A DNA stretch of 64,000 nucleotides from Octopus bimaculoides (taxonomy: Eukaryota): contig NC_068985.1 of NCBI RefSeq assembly GCF_001194135.2, positions 40,564,646-40,628,645 of the forward strand, given 5' to 3'. Shown piece after piece: positions 2,083 to 59,200 of the stretch. The number at the start of each line of letters is the position of its first letter. Within the stretch, counting starts at the first letter, position 1. The notes below the pieces were generated by a model. The model saw only the letters and a program-made list of their open reading frames with translations, ran no database searches and was not told the origin of the DNA. The position numbers and the translations under genes are program-made.

Positions 2083-5000
2083 GTAAGTATAATTTCTGTC
2101 AAATCTTCAAATTCAGGTTGCTCTCAGCAACCTGAATTCATCTCTCAGCTTTTTTTTATTTCTTGCTTTCTTTATAAAATCATTGCTCTTGCATGAATGT
2201 CAAACCATCTCTTTTCCTCACTTCTGTAACTGAGGCTTTGTTGGTGCTAGTAAATCCTAATTGAGCTGTTTATCAAAAGTTCCTGTTGTGACCCTATTAT
2301 CTTTTTGGGGGTATTTTGATACCAACCCACCTGAGACTGCTCATGGCTCTATGATACAGAGTACCACATTTAAAATGATCCAAATTAAAAACCTTATGTC
2401 AAAATTTCATGCTAATTATGTTCTAAATACCCGTTTGATATTGATAAAGTTACTTAATTAAATTCTTCATTATTTTTTAAAATTAACTAAGCAGAGTATT
2501 TCAACTGATACATGGTAAAAAAAATGGGTTAATGTGTCCTTTCCATTTTTTAAGATGGGAGATCCTAAAACGAAGATTTCACGTAAAAAGCATTGGTGTG
2601 AGTGCTTGTGCCACATAAAAATCACTAGTACTGGTGCCATATAATAAGCACCAAGTACACTCTGTAAAGTGGTTGGCGTTAGGAAGGGCATCCAGCCATA
2701 GAAACCAAGCTTAAACAAACTATGGAACCTGGTGCAGCCCCTGGCCAAGCTATTGTCATGTTTCAGGGTATTTTGCAGGAGAATATACTGGATTAGTTTC
2801 CTGGTATCTGCTCCCAGTCCAGTTGTACTTCTGCTACTTACCTTCCCAATCCTAGAATGAAGGAAGGTAAAGTCACCAACCCTGGCCAGATTTACACTCA
2901 GAACATAGAAATGTAACTAAGTACCACAAAACATTCTGTTGAATATTCTACCATTCTTACCACTCAGGTACAAGCATGGCTGTGTGGTTAAGAAATTCAC
3001 TTCCCAACCATATAGTTTCAGGTTCAGTCTCACTGCATGGCACCTTGGACATGTGTTATGTATGTGTGTGTGTTTGTGTTTCCTTATGTTGACATCATGT
3101 GATAGTTGTAAGCAAGTATTACCATCATGTAAGCAGTTTCATTTGTTTGGTGACAAAGAGATCATCCAGCTATTGAAAAATTTACTTCACTGAAATTTGT
3201 TTGACCCATGCAAGTATGGAAAAGTTAACATTAAATTAATGATAATGATGATGAATAAAAATTTCTTTCATAGGAACAACTCCAGGTATTTTAGCAAAAG
3301 GATTGGTTAATTAAACTGACCCCATTACTCTGACTGCTGCTACTAATTTCATTGAGCTTAAATGGATACAAGGCAAGGTTGACCTTGCTGAAATGTGAAC
3401 CCAGAATTTAGCATGTAAAAGGATCTAACTGAATACTGCAATGCATTTCACCCACTGAACTCTGATTCTACGATCTAGACTCAAATAACAATAATAGTGA
3501 TTAAGATATACACAATAAAGTTGGCCAGTTCTCTCTGTTGCTTTGTTTGCCAAATAATGCACAGAATGCAACAATTGATGAGATCCATCAAACCTATGCC
3601 CTAGGGAGAAACATGTTGGTGGGGTGGCAGTGTTGTTGTTGACAGCATATTTTGGAAAAGGGTTAGACTTGGTTAAATCCACCTCCCAACCTTTCATTGA
3701 TATTTATCTTATCAATCCCAGAAACATGAAAAGCAAAGCTGACCTTTCTGAGTTTAACTAAATATTGTAAGGGTTTTTGTTTGGGAATCTACTATCAATT
3801 CTGTCATCCACCATTTTCAATAACAACAATAATAATAATAAGCAATGATGACCAATGTAATCCTGAATTAACAAGTATTGACTAAATACCACATATATAA
3901 TATTACCAAATAGACACTGAATCAAGTTACTTTGTAATTGTTGGATTATCCAGATACTTCCATCAGCAAAACAGAATTCTTCTCAACTCTCAGTAAAAGA
4001 TTTTAAACATTGTCTTGTATTTTATGTTTTGTTGTGAGGTTTTTTTTTTTCTCTCACGTTTGAGTATACATAATCTCTTTATAAATTTTAACTTTTTGAA
4101 ACAAAAAAAAATTAAATCATTTTCTCGTGTTTTTAATTACAAATCTCACTTTATACTAGCTATTAAGCATTTAACTGTTCTCTTTTTTTTTATCTTTTCT
4201 CTTAAAGAATCTTTACGGCAGCCATTTGTAGATGGTGATATGGTTCCAGTATTAGTGAAAATGCTACAGAGTTCAGATACAAATAAAGCTGTTCAAGCTT
4301 GCAGAGCCCTAGGCAACATATGTTACGAAAATGGTAAAGTCCTTCTGAAATTTGTACTTTGTTGTAATTCATTTATTCAATTTTTCAGTCATTCAACTAA
4401 TTTATTTGGTCATTCATCAATTCGTTTATCCATTTATTCCAACATTCATTCATTCATTCCTTCCTCACCCATTCATGGATTTACCCATTCATATATTCAG
4501 TTATTCATTAATTTAGTCATCCAATAACCATTAATTTATTCCTATATCCATTCATTCATTCATTCATTGCTTTATTCACTCATTTATTCATTCAGTTAAG
4601 CATTCATCCACCCGTTTATTCATTCAGTCATTCTGAATATCTCTCAGATTGCATCCCACTATCTTAAAATGGATGAATGCATTTGATGAAGTAGTTCTAG
4701 ATACATTATATCTCAATAAAAGATGAGATATGCACAACTAGATCTCCTTTGATTGTAGGTCTTCTGAATCAAAGATGACCTGAGGATAAACAACAACAGC
4801 AGTACTAACAACAATAACAGCAACAAAATAATAACAAAAAACAATGATAATACAACAATAAAGCAAAGGCTGCAGTCATAAAACCTTATTTTATCATATT
4901 TAACACTTTAACCAACACAACTAACCTGCTTCTTGATGATGCAATTTCTTTTCAGTCGTCTGCAACATATAATTTTATTCCTAATAATAGTTTTTGAAAT

Positions 5001-8000
5001 TGTTCAAACAGCTGATACCTCTTGCTCTCAATGTCTTCATATTTTAACTTGCCGGTCAAACTCAACTGCAGTTCAGAAAGGCATGGAAGGGAATTTAACA
5101 GGATTTATATACCAAGAATAAGTGTACAGGTGCAGATGTGGTTGTGTGGTTAAGAAGCTTGCTTTCCAAGCACATGGTTTCTAGTTCAGTGCCACTGCAT
5201 GGCACCTTGGGCATCTTCAACTATATAGCCTTAGGCCAGCCAAAGCCTTGTGAGTGGATTTCGTAGATGGAAACTGAAAGAAGCCCATCATGCTTGTGTG
5301 TGTGTTTGTCCCCCACCACTGCTTCGCAACCAGTGTTGATGTGTTTACTTCCCTGTAACTTAGCAGTTCAGCAAAAGTGACTGATAGAATAAGTACCAGG
5401 CTTTAAAATAAAAATACTGCAGTCAGTTCATTCAACTAAAAATTCTTCAAGGTGGTGCCCCAGCATGGCCACAGTCTAATGACTGAAACAAGATAAAGGA
5501 TTGGCATGATTCTGTAGTTGACAAGCTTGCATCACAACTATGTCGTTCTGAGTTTGATCCCACTGTGTTGCACTTTGGGCAAATGTCTTCTGATACAGCT
5601 TCCAGCTGTGAAGGCACTTGGCTTAGTGGTTAGAGCATCAGGCCTGCACCATGAGGCAGTGGGTTGTGTTCTTGAGCAAGACACTTTATTTCACGTTGCT
5701 CCAGAAAAAATGCTACTCACTAAGCATTTTGTCTGATGTGCTAACAATTCTGCCACCTCGCTACTTTAATGATAATAACAATGATGATGATGACGATGAC
5801 AACAACCATCATCATCATCATCATCATAATAGGCACAGGGCCTGCAATTTATTTTTGTTCATTGTGCTAATGATTCAGCCAGCTTGCCACCTTAATAACA
5901 ACAATAATAATAATAATAATAATAGTTTCTTAGTCTAATAATAATGTTTTTCTTTTTCTTTTTCTTTCTCTGCTTTTATCAGACAATGCCCGAAATTGTG
6001 TAGATGCCACTGATGGGTTGAAGTCTTTGCTGGACCTGATGCGAGAGATCAACAACAACAAAGGTGGTGAGATAGGCAAACTGCGTACAGTGGCTTGCGG
6101 CCTCTTGCTCAACATCACCAACACACACAGTAAGTCAAAATATCAGAGATCTTAACGCTCCTTTCTAGCACACCTTCTCTTGTTGACTGTGTAAAGGTTC
6201 CTTTAGGTCAACAAGGGATCCGCTACACATCCTGAAATTTTTAAATCAGAAGGATACATCAGATAATGTAGTTCTAAATAAAAGAAGGCCATAGATGAAA
6301 CACTTAAACATAGATGTGTAGCATCAGGATTGACCTGGATTTTAAAAAAACAACAAAAAATAACATGAAATAAGGACAGTTTCAATGCAGTTGCTAACCT
6401 ACTATGAATAGCAGCCAGATCTGCTTAAAATGACAGCCTCCCTTCTTAATGAAGGAAGGGCACATTGTATGATGTTGAGGTTAACTATCTATTTGTACCT
6501 AAATGTACAGACCTGAACAAAGATTGGGGGTGGGGCTGCAGAAGACTAGCATTTACTCATGCATGCAAGTTTTCTATATCTTTGTTGTTTAAGGGAAAAG
6601 TTATTGTTTATTGTTTTTTTTTAAAGACCAATACAGCTTGACACCTGTGTCTTCATAGGTATTCCATTCAGAAGTGAAGAGTTGATGGAGATACTGCAAG
6701 GCATTTTGTCCAACACTGTAACAGTTTCACAGTCCACCATCCTAGATTGTGACTATTTTATTGACAAAGTTGAACTAGGCTGGATTTGAACTCATAGTTC
6801 AGAAAACCAGAACAAACATCAGAACAAATACTGCAAGGTATTCCATTCGGTGCTCTAAGAACTCTGCCAGTTCACTGCCTTTCAGATGGTGTAATCCTTG
6901 ATAATACTTTATCCAAATATATGCTGCATTCTTTTAGAGAATGTAATCTTAGATATACTATATCCTTTGAGATTATGTAATCCTAGATACACTATATCCA
7001 ATAAAAATACTGTGATGGTCATAGCTTGAATGCTGTTCAAACAATAAAAAGTTGGCATCGATTGAACAGTGAACCTGTGGATCACATCTAGAAATCACTG
7101 GATTTGTGGATCAGACATAGTAAACAATGGATTTACTGGCCACATCTGGTAAACAATAGTTCTAGGGATCATACCTAGTTAACACTGATTATGTTGATCA
7201 CAACAAATGAATTTTTAGCTGAACAAGTGAACCATACATAATAAATTTTAGATCTGTGAATCATACCAAGTAGACAATCGATGGATTACATGTAATAAAC
7301 ACAAGTTCTATGCATCAGACTTAGTAAATAGAAAATTTATGGATTATATCTTATCATTTGGTGAAATATTTATGGGTCCTAAATTTGTATTACCAGGGCC
7401 AACCTGGGCTAAACAACAATTAATAAAACCTTTTGTCTTTTTCTTCTCATCATCTTCCTCCTTTTCTTCTATTTTACTTGCCTTTTACTTTTATTTTCCT
7501 CAATTTTTCTTTCTCCTTTCTCCTCTCTCTTTTTCTCTTTCTCTTCTATTAGTACCTTTCTCTTTGAGACAGGAGATGGAAACACAAAAAGAAACCATAA
7601 CTCTTGTTTGTGGCACAGAAGTAAGAAACACCATGCTCAAATTGAATTATTCTCAGACCAAAGACATTCTAAATGCTTCTAACAGAGTGGACTTTGCTAA
7701 AAGTACCAAGGACTAGGTGGTGATGTCAAACTGGTCTACTATCCAAGACCAAGTATAATCCATCCAGTGGCTTTCCACACAGTTGCTGTCTACACAATTC
7801 CACTCACAAGGCTGACTCAAGACCCATGCAGTGGCATCAAATTTAGAACCATATGATTGCTCAGTTAACTTCTTAACCATACCTGTTTCGCCTACTGTTC
7901 CTCCTTTTTTGATTTTGTTTTTTCTTTTTTAGTTTATTCCCTTTTACTTGCATTTGTTTTAATTTCTATGGATAAGAGACTTAATCCACCACTACCCAGC

Positions 8001-25700: not shown

Positions 25701-27847
25701 TTCCACCCCTATACTAGCTGTGACATTCAAACTGTTAGGAGCTCTACGAATGTTAGTTGACAACCAAGGTAAGTTAATTATATGCAATTCCTGACATTGG
25801 TGAGGATGAGAGTGGTGGTGATGGAGAGATGAAAGGCGAAGTTGAATGTAAAGAACTAGAACAAATTCTGCAAAGCAATTTTTCTGATATTCTGGTTATA
25901 ATATTATTAACCACAAAGATTGACATTATCATCCTCTTTATTTATTTTTTTACCTCCACTTCAGAAGAAACTGCTAAACTTCTTGGCCGTGATAAAGTCT
26001 TCTTACCTAAATTAGTTGAGTGGTGTAATGTTGAAGAACATGCTGGAGTGAAAGGTCAGTATCTTTTAGATGTTTAATACTGTTTCTACTATTGCTGTTA
26101 TCATTGTTGTTGCTACTGTTGATATCACAATTTCTGCTATTGCTCCCACTGTTGTTTATCAGTTCTGAGAATGTGTCTCAGAGTACCGCTTGACTGGCCT
26201 TCGTGCGGGTGACACGTAAAAGCACCCACTACACTCTCTGAGTGGTTGGCGTTAGGAAGGGCATCCAGCTGTAGAAACTCTGCCAAATCAGATTGGAGCC
26301 TGGTGTTGCCATCCGGTTTCACCAGTCCTCAGTCAAATCGTCCAACCCATGCTAGCATGGAAAGCGGACGTTAAACGATGATGATGATGATGCATGAAGC
26401 TACCACTTTCAATATTCACTGAATCACAGCTGAACTGTAATATCTCAGTAGGTCATTATGCGTTAGTTAAATTTCACTTCATTTGGTTAATCAATCAGTC
26501 GATTGTGTTTGCTAAAGTCCTTTCATCACCATTTGTGACCTCTTCAATGACATGCCTTCTCTAATCCTACCTAAAGCTGACTTGGAGTAGAGAGGGTCAA
26601 GAATGGCAACGAAAAAACTTTGACAAACACAATTGATTGATTGTTTTACCAAATGACTAACTGGACAATTTAATGGTTAGTTAGTTAAATAGCTAACCAA
26701 TAAATAACCAATATTAAAGAAGTGAAATTGAACCAATGCATGTGTTTATTATTGGCATAATGATCCAATCAAGATATGACAAAATCTGTTTCAACACCTA
26801 AGTTCGCATCAAGAATCTTGCAAACCAAATACAAAAGCAAAATAACTGAACTGGCTTAAACAGATTTAAAGAAAAACAGACTCCATAATGACAAAATAGC
26901 CTAGTGAACAAGGTACTGGTCATAACATAAAATTTACTGCTGGAGTTTTATTTTGTTTCTGAACTGGACCTTTATTCTATGTTGCCTCAGATCACACAGC
27001 TGTCAAAAATAAATGCCAGACTGTTTGGTGCAAGTCTATGAGAAAATTTATCCTCTATCAACTTCACACTAGTCTTCAAAATAAATAAGAACCAGGGTCG
27101 ATTTGATTGACTAAAATCCCTCAATGCTGTACCCCAGCATGGCAGCAGTCTGATGACCAAAACATGTTTGAGAATTTAATGTATTTGTTGTTTTGAAATT
27201 GTTATTCTTCTGTTTCAATTGCTAGGTGAAGCCACACGGCTACTTGCATGGATAATAAAATACAGCAAAAATGGTGAAGTGATAAAGAATATTGTACGAG
27301 CTGATGGTATCCAGCACCTTGTGACCATGGCAACTTCTGAACATGTCCTCATGCAGAATGAAGCTTTAATAGCTCTGACACTCATAATTGGATCTTCCGT
27401 TTTAGGTATTGAACTTCAATATAATACAACTATATGTTGTGTGTGTGTGTGTGTGTGTCTACTGTGAAGAGACAGACTCCTGAGAGTTTTTATAAGTTTT
27501 GCTTCAACATCTATTCTAAACCACTACTACGTCTATTGCTATAACACCACTAATGATCACTATTACTACCACTACAAACTAACAAGGGAGACTCCACATG
27601 GTTGCACATTCTGTTAAAACATAGTAACCAAATTTCCTTCACTGGTCCTGGATTTCCTGCGCAAAGGAAAATGATGAGATGGTCACAGCTGAAATGCAAT
27701 TTAATCATGAGTCAGCATGATCAGGGCTGACCTGGGACCAAGCAACAAATACTACCATCACTACTACCAACAGTTTACAAAACTAAAATCCCCTTTGACT
27801 AAGTAGGGCTCAACTAAGTATGTCTGTGTGTATATGTGCATGTACGT

Positions 27848-47465: not shown

Positions 47466-50232
47466 TGTATAGCATCAGATCAATCTAGTCACAAGGTATT
47501 CAAATTATAACTGTCTACTTCAGATGGTGGAACTAAGATACACATAGAAAGTTCCAGATAGTATACAATCTAAGAGATTATATATCGGCAGCAGCGTAAA
47601 TGTAAGGGACATAACTCGAGTCAGATTTTACCAAAATTTGTTGCAAGTAGGTCATTTCTTTACTACTTAATCTGGAGCAAGCAGAGTTACTTACCTTCCT
47701 GAATGCAACGAGACTTTTGAACCTATAGCAACCATACAAGCTTTTGTAAATCTATATGATTTGGAATGTAAGAATGACTTTCTCCTTTAAATATTTGCTG
47801 TAATTGAACTTTGCTTATTGGTATTTGCAACGCAACTGGACCAGTATTTTTACCAGGATTACTACTCATGTTTATGGAAAGAGTGAAGTTTAATAATATG
47901 CACAATTTTCTAGCCAAACTGATTTTTTTTTTCCTGGCTAGTAACTTTTTGTGTAACCCTTAATACTGAATTGAGAAAATACTGCCATGTAATTTACTCT
48001 GACGAAGCACTACAAGTATGCAATTCTTGTAGAAGATTTTATTTCAGAATGTGTTACCCTGAGGAATATAGACATTTGGAATAAATAATAGATCTAAGAA
48101 TATTACTCGAAATGGGTTGTTCTGAATATTCAAAGAAGAAACTAATAACTATAAATATGCCTACACTATGCCAGTCTTGCAGCGGTATGACAAAAATGGT
48201 TCAAGTGCCAACTTAGGATCCATTAGCAACATTGAAGAATCCAGCACCCTACAGCTTTTCCTCTTACCAAATCGCTATGAATACAAAATTTCACTACAGC
48301 GTCATTCTGAATGATGACAGATTTGCTGTTTAGTTCTTTCACTGCACTACTCCCCCTAAAATTGTGTCAGTTCGTAAGATATTAAAGTAGGAACCCTAAC
48401 TACACAACCTCTCCTGATACATTACTCAAGCCCTTCATTCCCCACAGAGGATAGGCCATCAATGACTATTCTCCAATTATTTTGAATTACCATCAAGGAT
48501 TCTGTAACATTGCTACTGTCTAGGTCTGGGTGTTGGCCCCAACAGAAGTCCATTTTTACCTCTGAGAAACGGGTCTATGTTGGACTAGCCTCTATCTTTT
48601 GACATGTCCAAAGTGGGAGACCTTACCAGGATCTTGCATGCCAGTAGAATAGTTCTCTCAGTCAATGAGGTACACATCAAAGAATCTTGTAGCAAACTAA
48701 TTCTTTTGAGGTCCTAATTTTCATCCAATCCACTGGTTTTATTCCTGTCATACATCCATAGTATCAAGAACACTTCACAGTCTGTTACCCATGTCACCTT
48801 CATGAACAATTTTCATGCAACACTAGAATTTTTATTTCGAATGCCATCTTGAAAGTTTCAACAGGTTCAAGCTTAAATTTACTTGGTACCATCCAACTCA
48901 TACAATATACTGTCCTCACTTCTCAATAAAAAGGATTGAATGACACTGTTCCACATTTCCCTGTTGGTGGGGTCTCAATACCTTCAACCTGATACTTTTC
49001 CTGAACCTCCAATTCCTCTTTCAAAGAAATAGAGACAACAGCTTCTTTAAACCCTGCTTCAGCATGTCCTTTCACCACCAGTGCCATATCTGAGCTTCCA
49101 GTTCATATTTCCAACTATTCCAATTGTATTTATCTACTGTACTGAATATTGATATTGTATTTATAGATAAGGTTACAGAATTTTTAAGTCCTCATTCTCT
49201 TGAGCAAGTCCCAAACACTTCACAATGCAAGTGGATTTGTGAAATTCAAACCAATTCTATTATTTCAACAACCTTCTTAAGTTTCTTTTAAAATCTACAC
49301 CAAATAGTAATATTAACTTTAAAAAGATTCAACTTTTGTCATTTTTGAATAAAACTTGCAACTAAAAGCAATTTTTCAAAGTGCTCTAGTAAATCAATTT
49401 CCAGTTAAAAAATTTAAAAAAGAAAAAGACTGGTGGAATATTGTATGTTGATTTATTTGAAGACAGTTATAAGGGAGGGATGGGCAAGTAGCCACTAAAG
49501 GTTTACTTACAGTAAAATATCGAATAAGTTTTATCAGAAACTTTCAATGAAAGTCACTAGTCAAAAAAATAGTGTGAGAAGCTTGCTGTATACAAACAGC
49601 TGCTGAAGGACAATGATCAATGGATGAAATGTATAGATGGCCGTGTGCTTCATTCATCTAAAATAGGAGTAACATTAATTGTAGCCTCCCCTGTAAGATC
49701 CACCCCAACCACCATAATCACTGCTGCCTGAAAATAAAGTTATAGAAGGTAAAAAAATATTAGGATATAGAAACCACAAGACTATATATCCTGGTTTCAT
49801 TACTGAACATAAAACACTTTCGTAATTAAAATTGTATGCTTAAAACTATGTTAAATATATGAAAACTAAAGATTACTCACTTTACAATATTCAAAGTTAA
49901 AAACATAATAGATCACATAAATGCTAATGTAACATTACAGCAGTTATAAAATGGTTACATGTCAATATTTACAAAATATAAACCCAGTTACAAGAAAATA
50001 AGGATCTAAACAATATTTATATTATACTTTTGAATTAGACATGAATAAGCAGTTCAAGAGAGGAAGTAATTTAACAGGTAACTATACTTTAAAATTTGCA
50101 TGTTAGTGCAGCGTAAATTTAGCAGCAACATGTATATTATATACATTTAGTTGTAAACCTTGATTTATTCATATCTGATATTCATATCCTACACTTCAAG
50201 TTAAAAAACTGTTCAACTCACCAAGTGTATTT

Positions 50233-50270
50233 TTACCAGCTGGTTCTGTTCTGTCTCCTCCGTTTGTTAT
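50233..50270 (-). CDS. Alternative C-terminus B (likely terminal exon), DNKRRRQNRTSW*
   Basis: Long pyrimidine tract plus aacag acceptor, phase 1 compatible with the 52218 donor, basic NLS-like motif, followed by AT-rich UTR-like sequence. Confidence 0.72.
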
Positions 50271-53200
50271 CTGTTATGAAAGTAGTTGAGATAGAAAGGG
50301 TTAAATACTCAGTAAGAAAAAGAGCCAAGAATGTTTGAGGAAGAACAAGACAATTAGTAAACTAGTTGACAATTCTAAAATTGATTTTCATTTAAGTAGA
50401 TTTAGTACAAAGAGCATAGAGGTAAATATGGGAAGTGGTGAATATATATATTATTGACATATTTGGAGAAATAAATTTTATATATATATATATACATATA
50501 TACTAGCAGAGGCACCCGGCGTTGCTTGGGAATGAAATTGTTGCTTATATACTTGAAGAAAAAAAGGCAAAATATGCTGTATAGAAATTTGAGAGGACAT
50601 TCTGTAGATGGACTCTCAGATGAATGATGGCTGGGCGCCTGTCATGAATGGGGAAAATTGAAGATGTGCCAAAAAGCCTCATTGGTACTTGGAAACTTTT
50701 ACGAAAATGAAAATGGGGATTAAATGAAAAAAATGATTTACGTGAATATCCTCACAANNNNNNNNNNNNNNNNNNNNNNNNNNNNNNNNNNNNNNNNNNN
50801 NNNNNNNNNNNNNNNNNNNNNNNNGATGTATGCATATGACAACACAGCCCTTGACTCACTCACACTGTCTTACAAACACGCACGCGTGCGCATACACACG
50901 TCTTTGTAAATATGTTTGTATACATTTATGTATGTGTGTGTTTGTAAGAGACAGAGTGTGAGTGAGAGAAGTTTGTTGTCATGTATACGTACATGCATAA
51001 ATATACATACATCTTTGGATGTATGCATATGACAACACAGCCCTTGACTCACTCACACTGTCTTACAAACACGCACGCGTGCGCATACACACGTCTTTGT
51101 AAATATGTTTGTATACATTTATGTATGTGTGTGTTTGTAAGAGACAGAGTGTGAGTGAGTGAAGGGGTGCGTGTGTATGTGTGTGAGAGAGTGAGAGAGC
51201 GGTGTGTATGTAGTATTTACTCTCTCTCTCTCTCTCATACAGACTCACACACAAAATAGAGATGGAAGCTTTTTGCCGTTGTTAAGTCAATACCGGAAGT
51301 TAACATTGAGGAACCTTTTTAAAGAAGTGAATCTTAAATATAAAGCAATATTATTTATTTTTAATTAAAAAAATCAAATGAAGGGCCTAAGATTTATCCG
51401 AGGTCAAATTATTCACGCATCACAAGTATGGAAGCACTTGGTGAAGTCGATTTCACGTGAAAAGCGATTACACACACATCTGTTTTATATATAGTATAGA
51501 TATATATACATCAGGCAATAAAGTCATTCAAATTTCACTTAGTCTTGATTTTAATGTGGATGGAGATAAACACACACACTAATTAAAGTGAGCTTTTACC
51601 ATGTCACCCAAACTGGCTCAATGTCAAACCCAAACATTCCCTGCTAATCACCCTAGTATTTATTTGTAAGACTCAAGTTTAGGAAATCAAATCAATCTTC
51701 AAAAGACGGTTTCCATAACAAGGACATTACATTTCAGTCAAAAAATAAACTGGCACAATATTTACAAAATTTATAATGAAGCATCCATCTACTCTCGTAC
51801 AATTTAACTTAAAGCTGCTTTCTTTAATATCACAAAACATTACATAAAATTCAGCATTTCAGGAAGACAATTCAAATCGCAATACAACATTTTCAAAAAC
51901 AAACAGCAAGTGACATTTTTATAATTTAATCTTTAGAAAAATGCCCAACAAAATTTTATGATAATCTGAAACAATGAAAAATGTAGTTTCTATATTTTAC
52001 AATTTTGCTAGATGCCCTGCTTAATACAATATCTTTAATCAACTAAATTATCAAAAGTATATTGCTTTGAAAATCATTACCTGAGCATTAAGTGAACCCA
52101 ACAAAAGCAACAACCCAAAATTTACAGAGACACTCCCTCTTCACTCAATTCATTATCTGAGAAAATATATTTCAGTACAATCATTGAAATAGAAATCCAC
52201 TTGGAATCAATAATTACCATAGTTCATGCTGTCATTTCCATAGCCTCTGTTACCAGACTGATAGCCATAGCTATTGCTCTGATCAAGTCCATGACCCCAT
52301 GACTGGTTACCATACTGACCACCCATTTGGTTTGGATTCAGTAATTGTTGACTGGAATAAAATTGTAATCAGAAAATTACCACTGAATAACGTTAACATA
52401 TACAAATATACATTATTATAAATAATTAGGAGTGAAATTAAGACTTGTTTATAAACTAATTAGCCTACAAATTTCAATTTTGATAAAGATAACTATTTTG
52501 TACATTCTGATGCTGCAAAGTTAAATTTTGTTTCATTACAAAATGCTTTCCCATAAGGAAATACTTCCTGTATTTTAATTAAGCACTAATTTACAGAACT
52601 ATCTGTTCAAAAAGAAGAAGACCTTTTGTAATACTCACCCTAAAAGGCTAGTCAGACCCTTCAATAATTCACTGGTCTGAGAAAGTGCTGCAGTTACATT
52701 TTGGCTTCCTTGGGTCCTAATAGTAAAAGAAATAAATTTATACATATACTTAGAAAAACTTTCATTTTTTATTTTTTTGGCAACAGAATCAATATAACAG
52801 TTCAAACTTCACAAAATTATCCAAATTATAACCATACTAACCAGTTGTTGTTACCACCATCGATCAAATGTCTTCGGTTACCTCGATCCATACGTCCACC
52901 TTGTATAAATTGTCCAGGCTAAAATCATCACAAAGAAAAGTCATAAAATGAACCAAATAATCTTATATCTCAACTAAATGCATTCAACAATTTGGAATTA
53001 TAATTATAAAAATAATTGTCAAAGCCAAAGAACATTGCAGGCTTATGTTTGAAGTATTTTAGGAATTTTTCTTAACTTCATAGGTTTTGTTACGCTTTCT
53101 CAGCCTAACTTCATATGAATAATTTCTAATCTATTTAGACTCATTTCAAAGAATGGAAGTTATACGAAGAATAGAAATGTCAAATTATCTGGACAACGGG

Positions 53201-56200: not shown

Positions 56201-59200
56201 CTCCACTTTTTACATTTGTATGTTAATTCTTTTACCATATATTTGTTAGAAAACACTGCGTTTGTTTCAATTTAGTGTAACAACTCATTAAGCTGACTGG
56301 TACAAAAGGGTTAAATGGGAATATGTAATACTGCTTGGTCTACTATTTAATTAAAACATTAACCGCTAACATTTTAAACAAAATCTAAATCCACTGAAAA
56401 AGGTGCTTTTTCAAAAAGAGCAATAGTCTTTTTCTGGCAAGTCAAATGACTACATAGAAGCCCACATGTTCGGAGTGAACCAAAAGGGGACCTCTATGTT
56501 GTTTTTTTAGCTTGCTTGAAATAACACAATATCAAACTAAAATTCAGAAGACCTATTTTTTCTTTAAATATAGAGAGTTAAAAATTCTTTGATTCAGTTA
56601 ATCTATATTTCTCACCCAAGAAAAACTATGCTGTATTTTTTTAAAAAGCTAAACTAAATGAATTTTTAAAAATATATTTACCTATTTTTATTGAAAATAT
56701 AGGTGTATAGAAGACTATGCTTTGAGAAATTTCTAAGGCAGTACAAAGCAAAACCATTAGGATGTTAAAATGGATTTCTGTGCATATCTACGTGTATGAC
56801 ATTAATAGGTGAAGTGTTTTACTTTACCCATAACTACTAAGCGGGAAACTTGCTTAAATGTTACATGCCCTAAGAACTGAACAGGAAAATACAAGGTAGC
56901 AGTGGGAAGCAACAAAGCTAAATACATTAAAGAAAGGATTGAAATAAAACTATGAAGTCCCTATTTCATCTATTGATTACACAATTTCCAAGTTTGTGTA
57001 GTTTAGAAAATCATTTTCTTTCAAGATTTGTATTTAATGGCATATATAAATTTAATATAATTAGCCCATCAACATTTAAATTAGTTAAAAAATTTACTCA
57101 GCTTCCAAAAAAAATTTTAATTACGATTGTCATACTTTTGTAAGTTTTTTTTTTTCTTCGTCCCTTAGGAAATGTTTAAAAACATTTTGAACATCAATTC
57201 AACAAGGCCCACATAACACTCCCCACAGATTAGCTGATATCTAAATAGATTCCTATCAAATACAATTTTAGTAGAATTATTATGTGAACATTTTAAGAAA
57301 CTATGGGGGCAAAAAATTTTAACCAAAAAAACAAAAAACCCTAATATGAATCTAGTTTTCAATATACAAATTTGTTTTTTATCCAAATCAATGAAACATT
57401 AAAAATATGCACTAAAATACAAAAAATACACAGGAAAAAATAAAGGGTTCAACTTGAAGCAAAATTTGAGATGTGTTTTTGAGTATGCAGGTATGTGTTT
57501 TTGATTTTCCCTCCAGAAATTTTTATAGTGCCATTCAGAAAAATGGTGCAAGGATCAATAAAAGATCCTGACAAATATAAATCCTTAAAAGATGTGCAAT
57601 AAGAAAACAACTTTAGTTAAGTGACAAAAGTCACAAAAATATCACAGCAGAATAATTGGCATCAGTAAATGGAAAACTGTACCAATGAAGAAAAGTAAAT
57701 GCACAAGGTTGACAAATTACCCCTGATTCTGATCTTCCTCATTAAGTGGGATCACCACATTCCGGGCTGACGGGAATAATGCCTGAAGCTCCTCGACTGT
57801 GACTCCTTGTGGAATGTTGTTGACATAAAGGGAATAATCTTCCTTGTTCCCTGAAATTGTCAGGTGCTTACGATTGGGAGACAGTCTTAACAGATCAATG
57901 AGGATGCATTAACAAAAACAGGCAAGATTTGTAACAAGTTTAATCATAGAAGTCACAAAAAATAGCTTCTTCAAATGACATCAAGTGTTATTAGTGGTAT
58001 CAATAGCTACAAAACTGGAATCATTTAGCCAGCAGGAAAAATGGTTTCCCATGCTGTCAAACAGATTACTCCTTATTCTTCTGTACTAAGACCAAATATT
58101 TAATAGTACTTAATATGCATTTACTAAAATGAAATGCAAAATATAAATGCTTGAATAAAAAAATTTCTAAATACCTAAATATGCATAAAAGCTTTCAATT
58201 TTATATTTTACACAAGCTAAGAAAATAGAAATGATTTAGTTTAAAACCAGTTCTATATTTAAGTTTAAAATATTTTAATAAAATTGTCTAAATCCTTAAT
58301 TGTAATGAACAAACTTTAAAAGTTTACTTTATTTAAACTATAGTTTTTTTTATTTTTTTTTTTTATTTCCAGTTTTTGTTTAGGTTAAAAGATACCATCA
58401 ATGTTTTAAAACATCAAAAAAATGATCACACAAAAAAATGCAAATAATATTTATAAGGAAAAATGTAAAAATTACAAAAAAAAAAAATTTCAAATTAATC
58501 TGGGGATGCAATGAAGAATTGATTTTAAAACAAAGTTTGAATCTTGACATTTTAAAAAATAAAATCAACTTCATAATTAGCCAAATCATTTGGCTTCATT
58601 TAAACAGGTTGACTAGTTATTTTAAATAGCTGTACGATAAAATGATTAAAAAAAAATGCCAGCATCAAAACTAAGAGTAAAACCAGAAACTATGTTTGTT
58701 AGGTACAGTGAGAAAAATCAAATTCCCCTCTTATGTTCTCGTTATTTTAGTAACAAAAAAGCTAAATAAAATCTGAATTCAAAAACAATCAATACTACTA
58801 AATTTCACACAACTGATTTACACTAACAACAACCCTCTCTCCCAAAGTATCCATTCTTCTTTAAGGAACACCATTCCAGAAATAGGCAATTACTTCTAAG
58901 ATTAATTTTCCTATTTCTAGTCCATAACTTTGTAATTCCATTTCATTTCTGTATACCAGGTTTAGTTTCTAGTAATTATACTCATTTTTGCAACCTACTA
59001 GCTACACTAATTCTAGAATGACACTAGATTTGACTTAACTAAAACCACAGAAATGAGCAAAACCCCTACAAATAGAGTTCACATTCAAGTATCATACAGT
59101 TAAACTAAATACAGACCTCTGAATGCTACAAAAGCAAATATACTCAGATTTTATAAACTATCAAACACCTACCTCTTCTTTCGCCATCTTTTCCAGCTTT

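Follow-up and report, generated by a model that had tools for sequence, protein, structure and literature searches.

A putative stop-containing cassette exon before a shared glycine/tyrosine-rich last exon may provide alternative C-terminal tails for a coleoid nucleolin-like RNA-binding protein

We examined the 3' end of a gene for an RNA-binding protein in a stretch of 64,000 nucleotides (nt) from Octopus bimaculoides (hereafter the window; contig NC_068985.1, positions 40,564,646 to 40,628,645 of the forward strand), with emphasis on its positions 50,233 to 53,200; all coordinates below are those of the window. The gene lies on the minus strand and its annotated product is a "nucleolin-like" protein with two RNA-recognition motifs (RRMs; XP_014770175/6). 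The analysis suggests, with a probability of roughly 0.7, that the C-terminus of this protein is set by a short cassette exon carrying its own stop codon, located ahead of a shared last exon that encodes a glycine/tyrosine-rich (G/Y) tail, and that an acidic exon proposed earlier is not used. The cassette is conserved in coleoids together with both of its splice sites; it is included in octopod gene models and skipped in decapod transcripts.

In the proposed arrangement, the exon ending in ..DSMNY (donor at 52218) would be followed by a 49-nt stop-containing cassette (50270-50222) and then by the terminal exon (49727 to about 49435). Inclusion of the cassette would end translation inside it, yielding the basic tail DNKRRRQNRTSW and leaving the G/Y codons of the last exon as 3' untranslated region (UTR). 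Skipping would join the 52218 donor in frame to the last exon and add the 17 residues GSSDYGGWGGSYRGGYN, among them the only RGG of the protein, to the Gly/Tyr/Asn-rich low-complexity region. Both mRNAs would share one conserved polyadenylation (poly(A)) site. The sequence features expected of a cassette are present, namely a bounding acceptor and donor, an in-frame stop and, on skipping, an in-frame downstream exon in Octopus and Sepia (not in Argonauta).

A sequence-only reading of this stretch had already concluded that the gene offers more than one C-terminus, and this proved right for the basic cassette and the G/Y last exon; the second of these had been missed. That reading had correctly described the shared exon that would feed both tails, with its end at 52218 and a phase-1 donor G^GTAATT (GT at 52217-52216; the caret marks the splice junction here and below). 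The identity of this exon is 83% with Argonauta and 76% with Sepia. Retention of the intron past its donor (52217-52207) would give ..MNYGNY followed by a stop, the TGA lying 9 nt into the intron; the corresponding read-through sequence, GGTAATTATTGA, is conserved in Octopus and Argonauta, not in Sepia.

The basic acceptor AG^ATAACA at 50270 had likewise been read accurately. The exon runs (G)AT AAC ... TGG TAA, encodes DNKRRRQNRTSW up to a stop at 50235-50233, and continues for 11 nt to the donor G^GTGAGT (GT at 50221-50220). Octopod gene models all end in DNKRRRQNR(T/S)SW (five counted, in four species and from several annotation projects; the models named are O. bimaculoides X1 and X2, O. 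sinensis, two of O. vulgaris, and Argonauta hians). The Sepia pharaonis genome carries the exon between the ..MNY and G/Y exons, with an intact AG, the open reading frame (ORF) DNKRRRKNRTSW followed by a stop, and a GTGAGTT donor, so that the KRRR-bearing tail described earlier is real, both in octopod proteins and as an intact Sepia ORF. The coding part is 92.5% identical to that of Sepia, a value exceeded by only one of the ten constitutive exons (range 66-97%). By hand count in a five-species alignment, the substitutions comprise four synonymous changes (AAC/AAT, CGG/CGC/CGA, ACC/ACT) and two conservative replacements (Q/K, T/S), and indels are confined to the region 3' of the stop.

The TAA stop is kept in every species examined, and the AACAG^AT acceptor and the G^GTRAGTT donor are present in O. 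bimaculoides, O. sinensis, O. vulgaris, Argonauta and Sepia, at a stop-to-donor distance of 11 nt in Octopus, 14 nt in Argonauta and 15 nt in Sepia. Conservation also extends outwards: the block that can be aligned between octopus and cuttlefish consists of the exon with 21 nt of intron before it and about 36 nt after it, the introns being otherwise unalignable, and among all exons of the gene such flanking-intron conservation is seen only around this one and exon 5. Conserved as it is in every genome examined, the basic exon can be regarded as real and beyond chance, and the persistence of its donor suggests that this donor is used, which would make the exon a cassette rather than a terminal exon.

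Several further observations concern this exon. A hairpin hiding the cassette donor, drawn by eye in O. bimaculoides by pairing ACACTTGGTGAGTT with AACTTGAAGTGT, was discarded after folding of the four species gave no common structure (z-scores of -0.6, -0.8, -0.06 and +0.7). An internal donor, CTG^GTAAAA, would give ..TSWQQ followed by a stop in Octopus; the frame downstream of it is not conserved in Sepia. A decapod contig (L011, positions 4405-5252; ENA ERZ21867824, ctg60840l) carries a processed pseudogene that derives from the decapod orthologue and shares 84% identity with the cuttlefish transcript; this retrocopy is intronless, spans several exon junctions, contains stops and frameshifts, and ends about 10 nt beyond the ..MNY junction. 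The 5 nt that follow this junction, ATAAC, are nearer to the basic cassette than to the G/Y exon (GCAAC), a resemblance that is not significant. Two decapod genomic contigs of 1-1.6 kb (P0016 and P0018) do not reach the 3' end of the gene.

The partner of the basic tail is encoded by the terminal exon, which reads (G)GC AGC ... AAT TAA with its stop at 49677-49675. The same tail, GN(S/G)GYGGWGGSYRGGYN followed by a stop, forms the C-terminus of two decapod proteins (P0003 and P0009), and in three decapod transcripts (L004-L006; one from a cuttlefish or cuttlefish-like RNA-seq assembly, and L005 and L006 from plankton metatranscriptomes) the ..MNY exon is joined directly to the G/Y exon, the cassette being skipped. 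Both plankton contigs run into poly(A) just past a conserved AATAAA, which each of the four genomes carries 211-220 nt past the G/Y stop. O. bimaculoides, O. sinensis and O. vulgaris have kept the G/Y frame intact and in phase, and it can also be read in Sepia. In Argonauta, an 11-nt deletion and replacements have altered it, the frame at the homologous acceptor reading DKWLWWILQ...; judging from this frameshift, the G/Y tail can therefore no longer be made there.

The sequence-only reading had placed the choice elsewhere. According to it, the ..DSMNY donor would select between a proximal acidic exon (acceptor 52156) and the distal basic one (50270), the acidic exon could in addition act as a 76-nt cassette spliced onto the basic exon, and the outcome would be a localisation switch or a loop of the nonsense-mediated decay (NMD) type. 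The elements of the acidic exon do exist in O. bimaculoides: AG^ATAATG at 52156 opens an ORF reading DNELSEEGVSL, with a stop at 52124-52122, and a CAG^GTAATG donor ends the exon at 52081, giving 76 nt in total and 41 nt past the stop. The 61-nt intron that the model implies is not absurd, as an 86-nt intron exists elsewhere in the gene. Comparison with other genomes speaks against it throughout. In O. sinensis and in the independently assembled O. vulgaris, the AG acceptor is lost through a 2-nt deletion (TCTC--ATATTGG), 14-17 nt are inserted in the middle of the candidate, and the donor is weakened to CAT^GTAACG. The candidate is 78% identical to O. sinensis, which is lower than the neighbouring aligned, mostly intronic sequence (about 91-92%) and the real exons (97-100%). 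No homologous block was found in Argonauta or Sepia, and no protein with the acidic tail occurs among the clusters found in a collection of 5.8 billion sequences; conservation in squid and cuttlefish, which had been named as a check for both exons, thus holds for the basic exon in Sepia and fails for the acidic one. Moreover, chance alone would supply acceptors of this quality. Within 2.5 kb of the 52218 donor there are 105 AG sites; 14 of these are YAG sites whose pyrimidine tract equals or betters that of the acidic acceptor (at least 9 of 15), and half of the 14 are followed by a GT donor at a distance of 30-200 nt, the tails that arise by chance having a median length of 12 residues. That both exons begin with ATAA is correct and carries no meaning, since exon 2 of the same gene also starts with ATAA; a duplication relating the acidic and basic exons was likewise rejected, only the first four bases being common by inspection. 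The acidic exon is most likely chance intron sequence, and what is left is therefore an ordinary splicing switch, in which the alternative to the basic tail would be the G/Y tail at 49727. We hold the acidic/basic choice to be highly improbable, and give little credence even to the acidic exon as a minor splice product specific to O. bimaculoides, which is the most it could be.

Two other explanations accept the basic and G/Y exons and differ in how they are used. The basic exon might be an alternative last exon with a cleavage and poly(A) site of its own, in which case splicing would compete with intronic polyadenylation. An AATAAA does occur 63 nt past the basic stop in O. bimaculoides, and therefore the basic exon could sometimes be terminal in this species; the gene records, which give coding-sequence ranges only, end at the basic stop and fit this explanation too. 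Against it, neither O. sinensis nor Argonauta has that AATAAA, or any AATAAA or ATTAAA between the basic and G/Y exons, so that the sole conserved signal is the one that follows the G/Y exon, and the GTRAGTT donor has been kept in all genomes though the spacer between stop and donor tolerates indels. As a general account, we find this explanation quite improbable. The other possibility is that octopods have no switch at all: the cassette would be constitutive and the basic tail the sole product, the G/Y codons would be conserved 3' UTR, and alternative use would be limited to decapods. All five octopod models carry the basic tail, the Argonauta G/Y frame is destroyed, O. sinensis and O. vulgaris show an R to W replacement that hits the only RGG, and, as the whole 3' UTR is strongly conserved, an intact G/Y ORF could be a by-product. 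Yet O. bimaculoides and Sepia share 86.5% identity over the G/Y codons versus 70% over the UTR that follows, and the codons show no indels, five synonymous changes (including AGG to CGA) against two replacements by hand count, and a retained stop (TAA to TAG). This pattern suggests coding constraint along most of the path between the two species, and we consider the absence of a switch in octopods rather unlikely.

The reading that we prefer, a stop-containing cassette before a shared G/Y last exon, has points against it as well. Only octopod gene models show inclusion, all sampled decapod transcripts show skipping, no single species displays both, and the octopod models come without visible UTR exons. 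We infer the use of the cassette donor from conservation alone, and the AATAAA mentioned above could make the basic exon terminal at times in O. bimaculoides. Octopods may have stopped making the G/Y form, in view of the R to W replacement and the loss of frame in Argonauta. Metagenome and metatranscriptome contigs scanned with AAACGNAGGAGANAGAACAGAA returned four matches, all unrelated. On balance, both forms are presumably made within one species, and octopods appear to have shifted towards constitutive inclusion, at least in Argonauta. A broader proposal can be made tentatively, at somewhat less than even odds: the tail switch would be coleoid-wide and as old as the split between octopods and decapods, its default would have drifted between lineages, with decapods skipping the cassette for the most part and octopods including it mostly or always, the tails would alter localisation or condensate behaviour wherever both are kept, and the gene, given the ultraconserved block around its frame-shifting exon 5, would be a promising case of self-regulation by an RNA-binding protein in cephalopods.

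The claim that the gene contains a stop-containing cassette with its own donor was thus sound as to existence and mistaken as to identity, the cassette being the basic exon, with G^GTGAGT 11 nt past its stop, and not the acidic one. The argument built on the acidic exon, whose stop lies 41 nt from its donor and hence close to the NMD boundary, does not carry over. Stops more than 50-55 nt upstream of the last junction are those taken as NMD triggers, and the stop of the basic cassette lies 11, 14 or 15 nt from that junction according to the species (the 41 nt of the acidic candidate also fall short of this distance). With a stop 11-15 nt before the last junction, the cassette-included mRNA is therefore expected to be stable and translated, and not an NMD target. 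NMD in Drosophila and C. elegans is not known to depend on exon junctions, and the 50-55-nt rule is therefore uncertain for molluscs. Conservation of the cassette peptide speaks for a protein isoform and against a decay switch.

As for localisation, the KRRR of the basic tail fits the monopartite nuclear localisation signal (NLS) pattern K-K/R-X-K/R and is conserved in every species examined. The constitutive exons already hold the basic clusters HRRKNQSKKGKR, which include KKGKR and HRRK. Because of these clusters, the idea that the tail works as a simple NLS on/off switch does not seem compelling.

The window derives from O. bimaculoides chromosome CM046605.1 (GCA_001194135.2), to which it is identical base for base across the 14.7 kb compared. 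XP_014770175.1 ("nucleolin-like isoform X1") has 412 amino acids, of which residues 59-412 match eleven stretches of the window at 100% identity once alignment ends that run on into intron are set apart. The window does not reach residues 1-58, the first coding exon being located about 2.9 kb past the right edge. The protein measures 410-412 amino acids in O. bimaculoides and 408-428 in the full-length models and transcripts of other species. A Pfam search of the protein retrieved RRM_1 only (E 4e-9), in two stretches, the best covering residues 175-240, and not the four consecutive RRMs of animal nucleolins. A search of solved structures gave nucleolin RRMs as top matches (9cb5, E 1e-12; 2fc9, E 1e-4). 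The C-terminal region is rich in G, Y, N, Q and S and has no GAR (RGG-repeat) domain, the single RGG being confined to the G/Y tail. In an exhaustive search of 1.84 billion representatives, all sequences retrieved above the level of RRM similarity were from cephalopods; the named distant database matches are mostly nucleolins, at about 25-30% identity confined to the RRMs. With two RRMs and no GAR domain, the protein is therefore best described, from its sequence, as a nucleolin-like, coleoid-restricted RNA-binding protein and not as a nucleolin orthologue. A literature search for this gene found nothing.

The coordinates of the features discussed are collected below.

Table 1. Features at the 3' end of the nucleolin-like gene, in window coordinates.
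Feature	Position	Strand	Basis or remark
Penultimate constitutive coding exon (QQLLNPNQMGG...GNDSMNY)	52218-52341	-	100% match to XP_014770175.1 residues 357-400
Acidic cassette of the sequence-only reading (DNELSEEGVSL, stop)	52081-52156	-	Sequence as described; no comparative support
Assembly gap, 67 N	50758-50824		Intron between the ..DSMNY exon and the basic cassette
Octopus-cuttlefish conserved block around the basic cassette	50186-50291	-	113-nt alignment, 80.5% identity, E about 1e-21
Putative basic-tail cassette, 49 nt (DNKRRRQNRTSW, stop)	50222-50270	-	Octopod protein C-termini; conserved ORF, acceptor and donor
Coding start of the terminal exon (GSSDYGGWGGSYRGGYN, stop)	49675-49727	-	Acceptor ttattttcag^GC; phase match with the 52218 donor; decapod transcripts
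Shared 3' UTR of the terminal exon	49435-49674	-	AATAAA at 49457-49452; 49435 end approximate, from decapod poly(A) sites

In the direction of the gene, the assembly gap precedes the 50270 acceptor by 488 nt; it interrupts no coding sequence and persists as the same 67 N in the chromosome-level O. bimaculoides assembly GCA_001194135.2. The same arrangement of exons recurs in four gap-free assemblies (O. sinensis, O. vulgaris, Argonauta hians and Sepia pharaonis). Since the matched exons lie outside the gap and their order is the same in these assemblies, its continuity and frame are irrelevant to the finding. It lies immediately next to one of the two copies of a 147-nt direct repeat (50825-50971 and 51018-51164), and a gap beside a direct repeat is a typical assembly break. 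The repeat (stretch 50825-51250) is TG/CA-rich and internally palindromic. Scans of positions 49000-53000 on both strands found no tRNA, and with Rfam only far-sub-threshold microRNA-like matches, located on the palindromic repeat beside the gap. About 1 kb around the repeat (roughly 51480-50500) is without counterpart in O. sinensis; from its sequence, this stretch looks like a species-specific repeat or transposon insertion.

Further observations bear on other parts of the gene and its annotation. Isoforms X1 (..NLILGRPYP) and X2 (..NLRRPYP) differ by two residues at the junction of exons 2 and 3 (60843-60757). The X2 junction uses A^GTGAGT and AG^GAAGACC, the X1 junction requires a non-AG acceptor, and the X1 accession was confined to older source collections (eukprot, MetaClust); this isoform is therefore probably an artefact of annotation. 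Exon 5 (57850-57718, minus strand; 133 nt, 3n+1) codes for the first half of RRM2 and is embedded in a 277-nt block (57650-57922) that is 91% identical between octopus and cuttlefish. The exon is 100% identical and, with about 80 nt of intron on each side, almost unchanged in O. bimaculoides, O. sinensis and Argonauta; the few differences among these octopods are in the upstream flank, and the conserved stretch extends to about 1 kb in Argonauta. Skipping of exon 5 would shift the reading frame. Folding of the block gave no significant structure (z -1.1). This block is a better candidate for autoregulation or editing constraint than the tail-exon site. The Sepia pharaonis gene model CAE1304537.1 (L003, 10001-25109) stops inside the ..MNY exon (..NQSWGQVW), has a long and doubtful N-terminal extension, and lacks the basic cassette (26263-26316) as well as the G/Y exon (from 27483).

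These results have direct consequences for annotation. In O. bimaculoides, a G/Y-tail isoform has probably been overlooked and the gene probably continues in a 3' UTR exon past its annotated stop, the Sepia pharaonis model is truncated, and the acidic exon should stay unannotated. More generally, the gene provides a small and clean case in which cassette peptide, splice sites and flanking intron are conserved across coleoids and the default tail seems lineage-specific. Argonauta would illustrate how an alternative exon turns constitutive while the former coding end decays into UTR. No new kind of mechanism is involved; the gene would be a new instance of the known alternative-tail architecture, with partners that differ from those first proposed.

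Several known systems can be set beside this one. hnRNP Q/SYNCRIP and NONO/SFPQ, to which the sequence-only reading had compared the gene, have isoforms with C-terminal NLSs. Like them, the cephalopod gene has a KRRR in an alternatively encoded C-terminal tail; unlike them, it would retain the constitutive KKGKR and HRRK in both forms, so that loss of the tail need not stop nuclear import. With vertebrate nucleolin, the protein shares an acidic N-terminus and the best structure matches to its RRMs, whereas its two RRMs and the lack of a GAR/RGG-repeat domain make it nucleolin-like by name only. Stop-containing or "poison" cassettes with conserved flanks are reportedly a feature of SR and hnRNP genes, where they are said to mediate autoregulation through alternative splicing coupled to NMD. 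The likeness lies in a gene for an RNA-binding protein with a short cassette that holds an in-frame stop and is, together with its flanking intron, more conserved than the neighbouring constitutive exons. In contrast to those exons, the cephalopod stop lies 11-15 nt from the last junction, for which NMD dependent on the exon junction complex is not predicted, and the cassette peptide itself is conserved, with mostly synonymous change. By behaviour, the closest analogy would be Drosophila Squid (hrp40), whose isoforms SqdA, SqdB and SqdS are said to owe their nuclear or cytoplasmic behaviour to their tails. The cephalopod gene, known here from sequence, is no orthologue of Squid, as its RRMs are nearest to those of nucleolin, and its mechanism would be a stop-containing cassette before a shared last exon; what the two would have in common is an RRM protein with a Gly-rich C-terminal region, in which alternative 3' exons give short, different tails to a shared body.

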